DNA from: Octopus bimaculoides
Taxonomy: Eukaryota
NCBI RefSeq assembly: GCF_001194135.2
Contig: NC_068982.1
Location: 109,450,731-109,510,115, forward strand
Direction: 5' to 3'
DNA length: 59,385 nt
Shown one piece after another: positions 1,851 through 54,029 of the stretch. A program made the position numbers and the translations under genes. A model generated the notes under the pieces. That model had not been told where the DNA came from and ran no database searches. It saw only the letters and a list, made by a program, of their open reading frames with translations. How positions within the stretch are numbered: position 1 is the first letter of the stretch; each line of letters opens with the position of its first letter.

Positions 1851-2090
1851 GCACACAAGCTGTTTATTTTGTTGAAAATCCATACGAGTCTGTAGTAACA
1901 CATTTCAGTGTCGGACAAAATGTGATTAAAGTCCAGCGATTATTTAACATGACTGACAGTGAATCCATTCCACAAATGACCATTCAAAATATTTTGATAA
2001 ATGCAGTTTATGAATTCTCAGACGTAATTCGCTTCCACATCGATGGAGACGGATGGATTAATATCACTCATTTAAATCGAGCACAAACAC
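1851..2090 (+). CDS. Ret: Ret-like receptor tyrosine kinase, coding exon A (CLD1); 240 nt, phase 1 to 1
   Basis: Acceptor ctctctcttttcag|GC and donor CAC|gtaagt. Open frame (G)TQAVYFVENPYESVVTHFSVGQNVIKVQRL...FHIDGDGWINITHLNRAQT. Resembles the RET N-terminus [28 protein letters not shown] (recalled). Phase fits exon B. Confidence 0.85.
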
Positions 2091-3329
2091 GTAAGTTAAA
2101 ACTATTGATATCTTCGATTTTGGTAATTTTTTGTTGAAATTATAATGCATGCAGAATAAAAATTAATTGCACACGCATACACTTGCATCAAGGTATACAC
2201 AACATAAATGTTGAACATATGCATGTCCAAGCACAACATGCTTAATCCAAAACAAAGGAAATTGGCAAATTCTTTTTCACATTTTCAGTTAATCGAAATG
2301 AAATAATATGAATGTTTGACACTGAGTAACAAAAAGAATCACGGTCATGCTCCTTGGCGACACAAAATATTACTGCTGTATATTAGGATTTTAGACGAAT
2401 AAGGCTTAAGTGCAAAGTTGAAGAACCAAAAATTTCAAGATTGCATGGAAATGATTAGGAAAATGAAATTCATTGAGCATTTCGTGACCTAAAGAGATGG
2501 ATTATATATTGTACATACAATCAGGTTTGTTACTAAAACGAGATATGGACAACGAAATATAACCACACAATAACCAACTATAGAGTCGATGTTTCACAAT
2601 CTGGCACTGCTACAGAGGTTAACATCCTCAATTGCTAACTTACCACTTCCTGTTCATCTTGTTGCAAGGGTGAAATAGCTTACTGTTGTTCGTTGGACGT
2701 AATACTGACGTGTTTTTGTTAGAGCTCTCCTACTTTAAGCTTATCACCAGCACCTTCAGAATGAATTAGAAAATGAATATTAGTAAAAACGCATAAATCA
2801 TCACAATGATTACTTGAATAGTGACGTTTACTATGCAAAATCGTAACTCTATATCATGCTGAAAGTATGCAATGGGAAATATATGATAATGTTGAATGTG
2901 TACTTGATGTCTTATTTTGATGTCTTATTGCGAAAGAGAGTATTGGTTATAATTCTAAGCGATTCTTTAAAACTTGTGAGATTGCTGCAGTCATGTTTGG
3001 TAGAAAAGCATTGGCCAATAAGATGTTCCTAATTGTTGTTTAGAGAATTATTGCAAATAATAATAGTATAATATTAGTATAAATAATAGTATATAAATAA
3101 TAGTATAATATCAAAATGACTCACTGTAGCAGTTATGAAGGAAAAGAATACTCAGAATTAACTGAGGTGGCACATTGCTTGATAATTCAGAACAGTGTAT
3201 CTGGGAGCAGACGTCAGTTTCACAAACCTATTAATTGACAAATATAAATACTTGCATCCAGTTATAAGTTTTAATTTTCAGTCAATATCTATTTAATTTC
3301 TGACAGGCACATCATGCTACTTAACCTAG

Positions 3330-3700
3330 CACCATCACTTAACCAGCGGCGCCTTCATCGTTGTTCAATCAATTACAAGCACTCAAACCAGACCGCACAC
3401 ATACAGGCCATTCCATTCACTGGAACCAAATCGCTCACAACTAATTTCACATGTTGGCTCACAGACGTGCTGTCTCCTCTATATGCCGTTCACATCGATA
3501 CGTCTGCAGTCCCTGTTCTTCTATGCAAGCTCGACTTATTTCATCTCTCATCACCCAAATTGTGCCATGCCATATCCCTTGCGCGCTGAATACAAGGCTG
3601 CTATATACAGTCCTTTCTCCCCATTACATCAGTTCTCTTGAGTTCTCTTCTTATGCATGATTTCATTCCAGTAGCTTTTAACTGAAGCTGTTCTAGGGGA
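3330..3700 (+). mobile_element. Degenerate 3' end of a CR1/L2-like LINE ORF2
   Basis: Frame LAHRRAVSSICRSHRY...CSS...LISSLI...TRL resembles the post-RT C-terminal motif of CR1/L2-type LINEs. Related to the remnant near 57900. Confidence 0.45.
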
Positions 3701-4824
3701 ACATTAAGAGCATTATTCTCACTGATTAAGAAAGCCAAGGTACAGGCCCTATTCCTCTCTCACCAAAAATGCACTATACTTTTTATGAATGAGTTAAAAA
3801 CAAGAATGCTGTTTGGTACAGTGGACTGTGATATTGAGCAAACTATATTTAGTTCTCTCCGAAAACGTGAAAGAAACTCTCTGTGACCACACGACCAGTT
3901 CAAAGTAAAAGCAGAGATATTCTTTCAGAATCATACATCACCATCTTAAAAAAAAAAAAAGAGAGGAAATATTGAATAATATAACCACACTTGACATATC
4001 GTTTGAAAAGATGGTATGTTTTTGTGTTCTGCGCAATAAGAGAAGCCCTGGGCCTGAACATCAAAAACAGCGACACCTTAAAGAAAACAGAGTCAAAGTG
4101 TCCGGGGAAAACACAATTAAGGATACTCTGTTTCAATGAATTGTAAAATCTACCGCTTCCCAATTTGTGTAAATATTGATGTATCTATGATATGAATAAC
4201 ATCAAGTGTTATTTTGAAGTTAGGGGCCCAGGTGATCAGAGGCGATCAATAGAATTGAATTATACTAACCACAATCCTTTGATGAAAATGTCTTTGGAAG
4301 AAATCAAAAACCTTTGTTCTACAATATTTCCTTCAATTTTAGTCAGTTGTACATAGTTTTGTTATCTGTCAAGTGTGACAAACCTGAACATTTGACACTG
4401 TTGCCAAACTGCAATTTTAAACATAGTGAGATGAAAATAGTTGTGAGAATATAGTTGAAAGTATTGTTTACAACGAAGAAAATAGATCAGTATAGTTACA
4501 AAATTAGAATCATGTGGATCCCAACAGTAATAAGATAAGATTTTGATTTGAAAATAGCTAAGAAGCAAATAATTGAAACTGAAAATCTATCCTTAGTTTA
4601 GTGACAGTTAAAGTTGAAATTTACTGCAGCAGATGGAGGGAAGGTCATTTAATCCGCGTATAAGAGAAATGACAACAACAGGTTGAGACCACCTAAAGCC
4701 AAGTTTTCCCAGGAGAAATAATAATCTTGAAAGTCTACATACGTACACACACGTACATACATAGCCATACGCGCGCGCACGCACTCACACACACACACAC
4801 ACACACACACACACAGACTTTGAT

Positions 4825-51322: not shown

Positions 51323-51349
51323 TTAGGGTTAAGACAATATACATATATA

Positions 51350-51545
51350 TATATAAAAGGTTCAAAGGTTCAGGAAGCCAGTTGCCCGAATTCTGTGGCG
51401 TATAAATTCCTCCGTAGACAGGAGACTGGTACCTTCACAGGATTATGCATTGGTGTTTTTGCTCGAGAATACAATTCATTGCCTGGTCCAGGAATCGAAA
51501 CCATTATCTTACGATTATGAGTGCAACACCTTAACTTTTAAGCCT
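51350..51545 (-). mobile_element. Family C SINE fragment
   Basis: cctggtccaggaatcgaaaccattatcttacgattatgagtgcaacaccttaac resembles the head at 43870-43940. Confidence 0.5.
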
Positions 51546-53948
51546 CTCGTGTTTCGACATACACACATACACACGCATGTATGTATGTATGTATGTATGT
51601 ATGTATGTATGTATGCATGAATTATGTGTGTGTGTATATACATGTATATATATATGCATACACACACATACACACACACATGCATATATGTGTGTATGTA
51701 TATATATATATGCATATATATATTCATGTGTATATATGTATGCATGTATTATTAGTAATAATTCAATTTGCATTGTTAAAAATGTTTTATGTGAAGAGTA
51801 TCAATATTGATATATTCTCAGACGAAACAAAACGTCTTTTGCTGGACTCAGTGCTTTAAAAAAAACGTATTCACACTCAAAATTAATACTTTGAGTACTT
51901 TATTAATAGTTGGCTTACCATGTTCCCACGTACGAGTTAATCGCAGCATCTATCTACCTGTCTACCTGACTATCAACCTACTTTCCTGCCTACCTACCAA
52001 CCTACCTACCTACCTACCTACCTACCTACCTACCTACTTGTCTATCGGTCAGCCCGATTGTCTCCATCTGTTTGTCTGTCTGTCTGAGTGGCTCTCTTTC
52101 TCTGTCTCTGTCCTTATCTATCTATCTATCTATCTATCTATCTATCTATCTATCTATCTATCTACCTATCTATATGTGTGTGAATGCGTGTTAGTGTGTT
52201 TAAAATATCAAATGCAAACATGGAAGGTAGTGATAGATATTGCCATTTTGGACTTTTAAAGACGGACGTGGCAAAAATGATAAATCTGAGTACTTAAAAA
52301 TCAATGTTTGAGGGACTAGCTAGGTGTAAGAATGGTGAAAGTATGTCGCCATTAAACACCATATACACACAGACAAGCGCACGCACATACACAGACACAC
52401 ACACATGTATGTACGCATATGTGTGTGTACATGTATGTATAACCTCTCTATCTGTATATACTGTAGCTGTGTAGCCACAAAAATACCTTACGTAAAATTA
52501 GAAAAAAATACTTCCAATCGGGCTTATCCATGAAACACCTATATGAGTTGCGAATTCATTGGACCCGTTATTAAATAATTAGATTGCATGTTGGCTCGGC
52601 TGACATTTCGCGATCGCCTTTAGTAACATTTAGAAGGCAAACAAATACACTATTTTATGTTCAAGCAGCTGAAGTATTTTTAGTTTTAGTTCTTCTCTCA
52701 GAATGGTGCTTTTCTTAAATATCTTGTGTGCCTCTATGTGTATAAGCATGCTAATCTGTGTAACTGTTGCAATGAATGTGAATGATAATTTGCATGTTTG
52801 TATTTTTTCCTTTTGTTTTATTTCGTTTTCCATTTTCTTTATTATGTTTATTCTTATTTGAGAGTCCGCGTCAGTGTGTGTTTATGGACATGTGCTCGTG
52901 TACTTCTGCTTGAATAATAAATTTTCTATTTATACGTATTTACTTGTTCTATTTCTGTTTGTTAGCTTCTAGGATTTTGGGTCTATTTTTTTTTTTCGCA
53001 TATGTTTGCGTATGCCTCTGTGTTTAAGTGTGCTTTTCTATTTTATGCATTTTGTCGGTAAGATTTTTGGCAAGTGGACAGAGCCATCGTGGGGAATATG
53101 TAATGAAATATATTATGTTCTTTGTATGACAGCACAGTACAGAATAGTTCTCAAGAGATGAATCAATTCTTCTATACTTCTTGAAATGTATTGAATAAAT
53201 GAAAATGTTCTGATCAATACATTTCAGTGCATCTTTCCACTTTTAATAAATTAACGATATACGAAATATTTCAGGAAAGATATTTTCAGGAAGATGGTAA
53301 TGTCGAATATTTACATCTGCATTTGCACTTGATATTTTAATGTAAGCCACAACGTGGTAATTTTCCTTTATGCTCAGAAATACTTCATTGTAAAACGATG
53401 ATAACTTACAAGATATATCCTCCATGCTTAACATTTGTATGTTTTGTTGTATTTTTTTAATACTTTGTTACCCAATAAGGAGAAGAAATGGGTTGATTGT
53501 AACAGTATGGCGTGTATGAAATTATATAAATTGGAAGAATGTAACGCAAACATCAAAGTAAGAGAGCAAATTTACAATAGAGAAGAAACTCGCCGAAACA
53601 AACCAACTAGAAAATAATACCGGACACAATTTCTTGGGTTAAATATGAGGGTTTATTAAATCGATACCAGGAGACAGGCTAATACGTTGCAAATAATTTA
53701 AGGCATTTTTTAGGTACCTGCATATTTGGCCATGATTTTATGTCTCCACAATAGTTCGAAGATACATTAAACTGTAAACCCACTACTAATGTATATATTC
53801 AAGTAACTTCTGGAATATAAAAACGTTTGGTGGTCTTCCAAATGCCTTTTGACAACTTGATGAAAATTATTCTTATTACTTAAGCACCTATCGTAAAAAT
53901 CATCATTTTAGTTTCAATATACAGAATGGATGTAAATTATATTTGCAG

Positions 53949-54029
53949 GCAATCTACACATTACACGTGAAAGGACACGACTTGAATATCCAGAAGACGA
54001 TATCAAGAAACGCCTCCAAGTTTGCTCAG
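53949..54029 (+). CDS. Ret: Ret exon F (CLD3/CLD4 junction); 81 nt, phase 0 to 0; absent from the ORF track
   Basis: Acceptor tatatttgcag|GCA and donor CAG|gtaaaa. AIYTLHVKGHDLNIQKTISRNASKFAQ; the end matches human RET SVSRRARRFAQ. Confidence 0.85.

Follow-up and report, generated by a model that had tools for sequence, protein, structure and literature searches.

Six octopus exons assigned to a Ret orthologue, and a candidate pseudokinase domain in cephalopod Ret

Six coding exons and the protein they encode

The stretch of Octopus bimaculoides DNA analysed here is 59,385 nt long (the window; contig NC_068982.1, positions 109,450,731 to 109,510,115 of the forward strand) and contains six plus-strand coding exons, which together extend over 52 kb with repeat-rich introns between them. 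These exons encode cadherin-like domains (CLDs) of the receptor Ret, and are very probably six consecutive internal coding exons of the O. bimaculoides Ret orthologue.

An initial annotation made from the sequence had described six GT-AG exons with compatible phases, joined into one 1181-nt stop-free frame. All GT-AG chains that begin at 1851, finish at 54029 and have the five intron lengths given there (15883, 14220, 1952, 7117 and 11826 bp) were searched exhaustively; 56 chains fit those lengths, and just one of them, on the plus strand, was both 1181 nt long and stop-free, which bears out the description. This unique chain translates into 393 stop-free codons following a split first codon, with junction phases of 1, 1, 1, 0, 1, 0 and 0 along its length. 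All six acceptors are rich in pyrimidines and close with cag or tag, half of the donors read gtaagt and the other three gtaaac, gtaata and gtaaaa, and the open frames extend only a few codons past each exon edge. Two exons had been called invisible in the open reading frame (ORF) track; these are exons 2 and 6, which are missing from the plus-strand list because their open frames have no early start codon. When the annotated octopus Ret proteins were compared with the window by tblastn, the same six segments were recovered, ordered and contiguous in the protein, and no others (Table 1). Exon 1 is bounded by ttttcag/G and AC/gtaagt (slashes mark the exon edges), and was matched by residues 36-118 of one protein (P0153) at 95% identity and by residues 1-50 of XP_014784477.1 (P0152).

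Table 1. Features located in the window, with the Ret exons first and the transposon remnants below them
Feature	Position	Strand	Length	Phases	Human RET equivalent	Content	Basis
Exon 1	1851..2090	+	240 nt	1-1	exon 2	mature N-terminus and first half of CLD1; residues 1-79 plus one base of codon 80	unique chain, tblastn
Exon 2	17974..18270	+	297 nt	1-1	exon 3	end of CLD1 and first half of CLD2; residues 80-178; invariant LCF Cys, VEEN calcium-site motif	tblastn, 99 aa at 99% identity
Exon 3	32491..32750	+	260 nt	1-0	exon 4	second half of CLD2 (LNRE, CTVH Cys, DVDDNPPLF) and start of CLD3; residues 179-265; sole part recognised by Pfam as Cadherin domain	chain, tblastn, Pfam
Exon 4	34703..34895	+	193 nt	0-1	exon 5	CLD3 including TDRD calcium-site motif; residues 266-329	chain, tblastn, profile alignment
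Exon 5	42013..42122	+	110 nt	1-0	exon 6, together with octopus exon 6	CLD3; residues 330-366	tblastn, 39 aa at 97% identity
Exon 6	53949..54029	+	81 nt	0-0	exon 6, together with octopus exon 5	last CLD3 strands, then SRNASKFAQ motif where CLD4 begins; residues 367-393	chain, tblastn
Mariner/Tc1-like transposase remnant	5700-6332	-				intron 1; at least one frameshift, partial	Pfam
Mariner/Tc1-like transposase remnant	14698-15216	+				intron 1; only C-terminal part left	Pfam
Mariner/Tc1-like transposase remnant	21733-22278	-				intron 2; one in-frame stop, abuts assembly gap	Pfam
Mariner/Tc1-like transposase remnant	44271-45243	-				intron 5; at least one frameshift	Pfam

XP_014784477.1, a RefSeq entry named ‘proto-oncogene tyrosine-protein kinase receptor Ret’, matches the spliced peptide at 100% identity, and so does A0A0L8G3B5 of the same species, an older 709-aa UniProt model named ‘Cadherin domain-containing protein’. 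An exhaustive HMMER search with the peptide, as the initial annotation had proposed, led to the octopus Ret proteins, with one outstanding match (P0001, 1174 aa, E 1.3e-250, 96% identity) that aligned query residues 1-393 to protein residues 35-427 in a single ungapped stretch; the other matches were cadherins aligned to the CLD2 region only. The cluster of the best match holds CAI9717068.1 and QHX41560.1 of O. vulgaris, XP_029655451.2 of O. sinensis, and XP_014784477.1 and A0A0L8G3B5 of O. bimaculoides, and the peptide has 96% identity with the three O. vulgaris and O. sinensis proteins. A word-indexed homologue search, whose index reaches close relatives only, returned none for the spliced peptide, and with the ectodomain alignment it returned one protein that was already in hand.

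Beyond the window-encoded part, Pfam assigned to XP_014784477.1 a Cadherin domain (134-207), RET_CRD (PF22540, 444-548, E 6.5e-30) and PK_Tyr (723-995), and the gene model has one transmembrane helix, as in a single-pass receptor. The same domain layout was found in the Argonauta protein and in two transcript-derived relatives, and RET_CRD in all the cephalopod relatives. Because one gene model spans ∼240 kb on a 192-Mb contig (GCA_001194135.2; 286 kb in O. vulgaris), the kinase exons are physically linked to those in the window. Against the PDB, the kinase-fold domain scored 238 bits with human RET versus 209 bits with the best FGFR; an EGFR entry tops that list only because its chain holds two kinase copies. 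A transcript contig from a 64%-identical relative, intronless and 3763 nt long, is colinear with the protein across all six junctions. The claim of a lophotrochozoan Ret is thus supported by the identity to an annotated Ret that carries RET_CRD and a kinase fold closest to that of RET. The further claim that the exons reconstruct the ectodomain stands for CLD1 to CLD3 plus the first residues of CLD4, which make up only ∼60% of it: by alignment CLD1 spans residues 1 to ∼115, CLD2 116-251, CLD3 252 to ∼384, and CLD4 the last nine. The signal-peptide exon, the rest of CLD4, the cysteine-rich domain, the kinase and the next coding exon (IYKIPDKGG...) were all absent from the window by tblastn.

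An ectodomain profile built from three cephalopod lineages and Haliotis matched human RET (4ux8, 6q2j and 6gl7) with E-values of around 1e-41 (E 8.5e-42); profile positions 153-622 align with human RET chain residues 125-593 as a single colinear stretch, and the best non-RET match was desmoglein-3 (E 1.9e-12). Along this stretch LCF, VEEN, LNRE and CTVH of octopus pair with ELCF, IREN, LDRE and CTVH of human RET, and DVDDNPPLF, TDRD and SRNASKFAQ with DEDDSAPTF, FDAD and SRRARRFAQ. In the alignment of the cephalopod and Haliotis proteins C130, C221, E147, R209, E210, D246, N247, P248, F251 and D278 are invariant, and a single set of cadherin-type calcium-site motifs lies at the CLD2/CLD3 junction from Haliotis to octopus, matching that of human RET. 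Pfam found in the peptide one lone canonical repeat (Cadherin PF00028, residues 165-239, E 1.2e-6), the same pattern as in Haliotis Ret. The motif order that had been offered as a RET signature therefore does match human RET residue for residue, but is insufficient as a signature, given that a profile limited to the window favours cadherins.

That last result is one of several that weigh against the Ret assignment. The window-only profile (393 residues) ranked CELSR1, desmoglein-3 and protocadherins first (E 1.5e-14 to 1e-11), with zebrafish RET at 2.2e-8 and human RET CLD1-2 at 5.4e-5; for the peptide alone against the PDB, protocadherins were best (4e-8) and zebrafish RET reached only 0.033, and the peptide parts without CLD2 (exons 1-2 and exons 4-6) gave no significant sequence match there. 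The Pfam models RET_CLD1, RET_CLD3 and RET_CLD4 matched neither the peptide nor the full-length cephalopod and Haliotis proteins, and the sole RET_CLD trace in the peptide (RET_CLD1, E 0.038, 14.8 bits versus a cut-off of 26.4) falls inside CLD2. For the first two thirds of CLD1, counted from the N-terminus, no alignment to human RET was obtained, and zebrafish RET aligns from profile position 68. A structure prediction to be set against RET CLD1-4 had also been proposed; the AlphaFold model reached a predicted local distance difference test score (pLDDT) of 36.8 from the single sequence and 50.8 with a six-sequence alignment. Foldseek placed RET ectodomains at ranks 2-6, 9 and 10 in the PDB for this low-confidence model, with the lowest root-mean-square deviation, but at E about 5e-8 to 1e-7 and template-modelling (TM) scores of 0.26-0.30 RET was not separated from Fat4 and protocadherins. 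The splice junctions are taken from gene models and a relative's transcript rather than from O. bimaculoides RNA-seq reads, and of the six human RET exon boundaries used in the comparison below four come from papers, c.625 and c.867 being taken as background.

Could the exons then be those of an ordinary cadherin or protocadherin, or of some cadherin-like gene unlinked to a kinase? The protocadherins, CELSR1 and desmoglein among the best PDB matches of the peptide and the window-only profile speak for this, as does the name of the 709-aa UniProt model, which mentions only a cadherin domain. Cadherins outrank RET for the window-only profile, however, because their many repeats each match the single canonical CLD2, and RET, unlike the cadherins, matches that profile as one long colinear stretch; likewise, the failures of the RET_CLD models probably reflect narrow models, because Haliotis Ret fails too. 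Just one canonical cadherin repeat is detectable in the peptide, in a single gene model the identical protein goes on to include RET_CRD and a RET-like kinase domain, RET_CRD is present even in the 709-aa model, and the colinear alignment with human RET has no counterpart among cadherins at its E-value. We consider a cadherin gene extremely unlikely. Best hits to cadherins, one of the outcomes that the initial annotation had named as telling against Ret, are indeed what the window-only residues give, while another, the lack of a linked tyrosine-kinase domain, is contradicted by the kinase fold in the gene model; a judgement by best cadherin hits misfires on this gene. Since the window part favours cadherins, the identification as Ret rests on the linkage to the cysteine-rich and kinase domains and not on the motifs. 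Membership in the classical cadherins or protocadherins was rejected as well, there being no tandem array of canonical extracellular cadherin (EC) repeats and the cytoplasmic part being a kinase fold.

A non-functional duplicate or decaying Ret exons would be a different matter, and the surroundings, rich in transposon remnants, microsatellites and assembly gaps, would suit such a relic. The six exons are nonetheless intact, have good splice sites and encode a peptide 100% identical to the RefSeq protein, and the identities of 96%, 67% and 51% across relatives fit a constrained coding sequence. The O. bimaculoides members of the cluster are one RefSeq and one older truncated model, a count that comes from the cluster and not from a separate paralogue search. 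Such a duplicate or decaying copy is, in our judgement, very unlikely.

In O. bimaculoides, O. sinensis, O. vulgaris and Argonauta hians, annotation by the name Ret already exists for this gene, and the Crassostrea gigas kinome lists Ret as a single-copy family (PMC4883820). The finding is a correct rediscovery of an annotated gene, and a lophotrochozoan Ret is not a new fact; the literature searches on cephalopod or octopus Ret found no paper. What is new in the gene itself is minor, namely a coding exon 1 longer than that of RefSeq and the comparison of the introns with those of human RET.

The kinase-like domain outside the window

The kinase-like domain of the same protein (residues about 708-1008 of XP_014784477.1) was compared among six full-length cephalopod sequences, from O. 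bimaculoides, O. sinensis, O. vulgaris (two), Argonauta hians and the transcript of a more distant relative, and aligned to human RET and Haliotis Ret. In every one of the six, the P-loop reads R-x-G-x-x-G instead of G-x-G-x-x-G, HGD replaces HRD with the Arg lost and the Asp kept, NLR or NFR replaces DFG with its Asp absent, both activation-loop tyrosines (the Y900 and Y905 equivalents) are lost, and DPN replaces the APE-type motif with Asn in place of Glu. The beta3 Lys, the alphaC Glu and the catalytic-loop Asp and Asn (HGDLSARN) are kept, and so is the NxxY motif of the tail. Haliotis and human RET keep the catalytic motifs. One of the six sequences lies on the intronless 3763-nt contig and is thus transcript-derived. 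From O. bimaculoides to O. vulgaris, Argonauta and the distant relative, the kinase-like domain is 100%, 97% and 91% identical, against 96%, 67% and 51% for the window-encoded part.

Absence of the DFG Asp is a standard criterion for a pseudokinase. Judged at the level of sequence, where the class is defined by a kinase fold short of at least one of three residues (beta3 Lys, HRD Asp, DFG Asp), cephalopod Ret qualifies as a pseudokinase by the last of these residues. The losses leave its orthology to Ret unaffected but bear on whether it works as a kinase, and we lean slightly towards cephalopod Ret being a conserved receptor pseudokinase. A search of the literature library found no paper mentioning cephalopod Ret as such.

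On the opposite reading cephalopod Ret would be fully active through ligand-induced trans-autophosphorylation, as vertebrate and Drosophila Ret are, its odd motifs being tolerated substitutions. The retained beta3 Lys, alphaC Glu and catalytic-loop Asp and Asn agree with this, as do the strong constraint on the domain, the conserved NxxY tail motif and the databases that name the protein a kinase. Weighing against a pseudokinase, too, is that this step is drawn solely from motifs, and that some kinases with unusual motifs stay active. The activity of the domain has to be reconciled, on the other hand, with replacement of the magnesium-binding DFG Asp (NLR/NFR) and of the first P-loop Gly by Arg in all six sequences, and with the loss from all six of both activation-loop Tyr positions and the APE Glu, which Haliotis and human RET keep. 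We regard a fully active cephalopod Ret as possible, though somewhat doubtful.

How a receptor with a pseudokinase domain might work can be sketched from vertebrate RET, in which ligand and co-receptor are both contacted by the cysteine-rich domain close to the membrane. Going by vertebrate RET structures, the window-encoded part would be the calcium-stabilised half of the ectodomain that faces the co-receptor, and ligand binding would bring two receptors together. The output step in cephalopods would then differ from classical autophosphorylation, which the sequences make reasonably probable. The intracellular domain would more probably serve as a pseudokinase scaffold, with a partner kinase either phosphorylating it or coupled to it by allostery, a proposal made because the active site appears disabled and yet the domain is strongly constrained. 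If true, a receptor that is canonically active in vertebrates and flies would have turned into a non-catalytic signalling subunit in the cephalopod lineage, and the questions about Ret in the cephalopod nervous system would shift to which partner kinase and which co-receptor it uses.

A possible shorter product was also noticed. Transcript contigs from two sequencing runs (L002 2440-2600 and L003 2382-2509) read through a GAG/GTAAGC donor after the juxtamembrane ...GHTE and stop seven codons on, giving a 778-aa kinase-less product, and the 709-aa O. bimaculoides UniProt model (P0154) has its end there too. Behind this may lie either a genuine short isoform that retains the intron or simply unspliced pre-mRNA.

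Intron positions, gaps and repeats

Four human RET exon ends were taken from variant names in papers, i.e. c.73 in phase 1 (PMC3210088), c.337 in phase 1 (PMC7198720), the end of exon 5 at c.1063 in phase 1 (PMC3601093), and the end of exon 6 at c.1263 in phase 0, after Gln421 (PMC3778950). The phase pattern at these sourced ends (1, 1, 1, 0) is the same as at the corresponding octopus junctions. Two further human boundaries we take to be c.625 (phase 1) and c.867 (phase 0). The lengths are 240 nt in octopus exon 1 versus 264 nt in human exon 2, 750 nt in octopus exons 2-4 versus 726 nt in human exons 3-5, and 191 nt in octopus exons 5 and 6 together versus 200 nt in human exon 6. To place the junctions on the structure, the 607-residue chain of 4ux8 was converted into RET numbering by adding 28, an offset that we infer from its N-x-S/T sequons and the RET glycosylation-site numbers. 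The 3′ end of octopus exon 6 (after FAQ, chain residue 393) coincides with the end of human exon 6 in position and phase, and the exon 2/3 junction falls, in phase 1, on the residue aligned with human codon 209 (chain residue 181), the human boundary there being taken as c.625/626. Two other junctions lie at most 2 residues from the human ones, the end of exon 4 differing by 2 residues from c.1063; CLD1 being unalignable there, the exon 1/2 junction has no assigned position on human RET. The octopus exons thus correspond to human RET exons 2 to 6 plus one extra intron. This phase-0 intron (42123-53948) splits the equivalent of the single 200-nt human exon 6 and has no human counterpart; by sequence comparison it was either gained in the octopus lineage or lost in vertebrates.

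At the 5′ edge, the proteins of O. vulgaris, O. sinensis and Argonauta include as coding sequence the 98 nt from the acceptor at 1851 to 1948, and XP_014784477.1 begins at an internal Met at 1949, without a signal peptide. A signal-peptide-like stretch is carried by QHX41560.1, the Argonauta protein and two transcript-derived proteins; CAI9717068.1 and XP_029655451.2 are without one, and their N-termini differ from each other. The first coding exon, which lies outside the window, is probably mis-modelled in several annotations. The annotation gain at window 1851-1948, coding from the splice acceptor onwards, is a small one.

Runs of N number 12 within the exon span and 13 in the window (8249-56732), compared with six in a program-made note. 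Each of those in the span lies within an intron, its distance to the closest exon edge ranging from 192 to 6159 nt, and microsatellites (AT, AC or TC) flank most of the runs, as is typical of short-read assembly breaks; no reading frame of the chain crosses any of them. No coding exon can be concealed in these gaps: independent models, from chromosome-scale assemblies of O. bimaculoides and two other Octopus species, show an uninterrupted protein at every junction, and so does the intronless transcript contig of the more distant relative. The intron lengths given by the initial annotation hold as assembled, the chain fitting all five, but those of introns 1, 2, 4 and 5 are estimates only, because N gaps lie in them.

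No other gene was seen on either strand in the ORF list or by tblastn of the Ret proteins against the window, and Rfam and tRNA scans of the window gave no match. The four transposase remnants (Table 1) were recognised by Pfam Transposase_1, DDE_3 and HTH_48, and none of them retains an intact transposase frame; their lesion counts, derived from ORF tiling only, are minima. A perfect-looking (CTA)42 array at 48365-48491 yields the long poly-Val, poly-Ser and poly-Tyr entries of the ORF list, and dinucleotide arrays explain most of the other listed ‘ORFs’, among them (AC)n tracts such as 7564-7656, 23532-23621 and 36849-36929. The minus-strand ORF at 58444-58650 has a reverse-transcriptase-like look (GVPQ...L...ND...Y.DD) and no Pfam match at E 0.01, and may, on the look of its sequence, be a LINE fragment.

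Comparison with known receptors

Vertebrate RET (4UX8, 6Q2J and 6GL7; zebrafish 7AMK and 7AML; kinase 2IVS) has the same order of CLDs, cysteine-rich domain, transmembrane helix and kinase fold as the octopus protein, and is colinear with it from the end of CLD1 through the whole cysteine-rich domain. Both proteins have the LCF and CTVH cysteines, and the calcium-site set at CLD2/CLD3 and SRxAxxFAQ are likewise common to both, as is the pattern of intron phases, with one junction identical and one extra octopus intron in the exon 6 equivalent. Their CLDs are only 15-18% identical by Foldseek, and human RET is reached by profile search only. A further difference lies in the kinase domain, which in octopus is without the DFG Asp, the HRD Arg, the P-loop Gly, the activation-loop Tyr residues and the APE Glu. 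GDNF-family ligands are not known outside vertebrates, and so none is known in protostomes.

Among molluscs, the Ret-like protein of Haliotis (XP_046579109.1) shares the Pfam architecture of Cadherin, RET_CRD and PK_Tyr, and its ectodomain can be aligned with that of octopus over the full length, at 24% identity in the window-encoded part and 41% in the cysteine-rich domain. Haliotis Ret keeps HRD, DFG, the APE-type motif and a canonical GxGxxG, whereas cephalopod Ret does not.

For Drosophila Ret, the co-receptor is Gfrl (PMC3527400) and the ligand, as reported through a citing paper, is the TGF-beta family member Maverick (Myers et al. 2018; Hoyer et al. 2018), in agreement with the initial annotation. 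As a protostome Ret without a known GDNF-family ligand, the Drosophila receptor is the nearest functional model for what the octopus ectodomain might bind. To our knowledge, Ret belongs to none of the established pseudokinase families, and outside cephalopods its orthologues are active as kinases. The receptor tyrosine pseudokinases comprise HER3, PTK7/CCK4, RYK, ROR1/2, EphA10, EphB6 and STYK1 (PMC13259870). These combine a conserved kinase fold with replacement of one or more essential residues and signal via partners, and cephalopod Ret, as read from its motifs, would share with them the loss of the DFG Asp.

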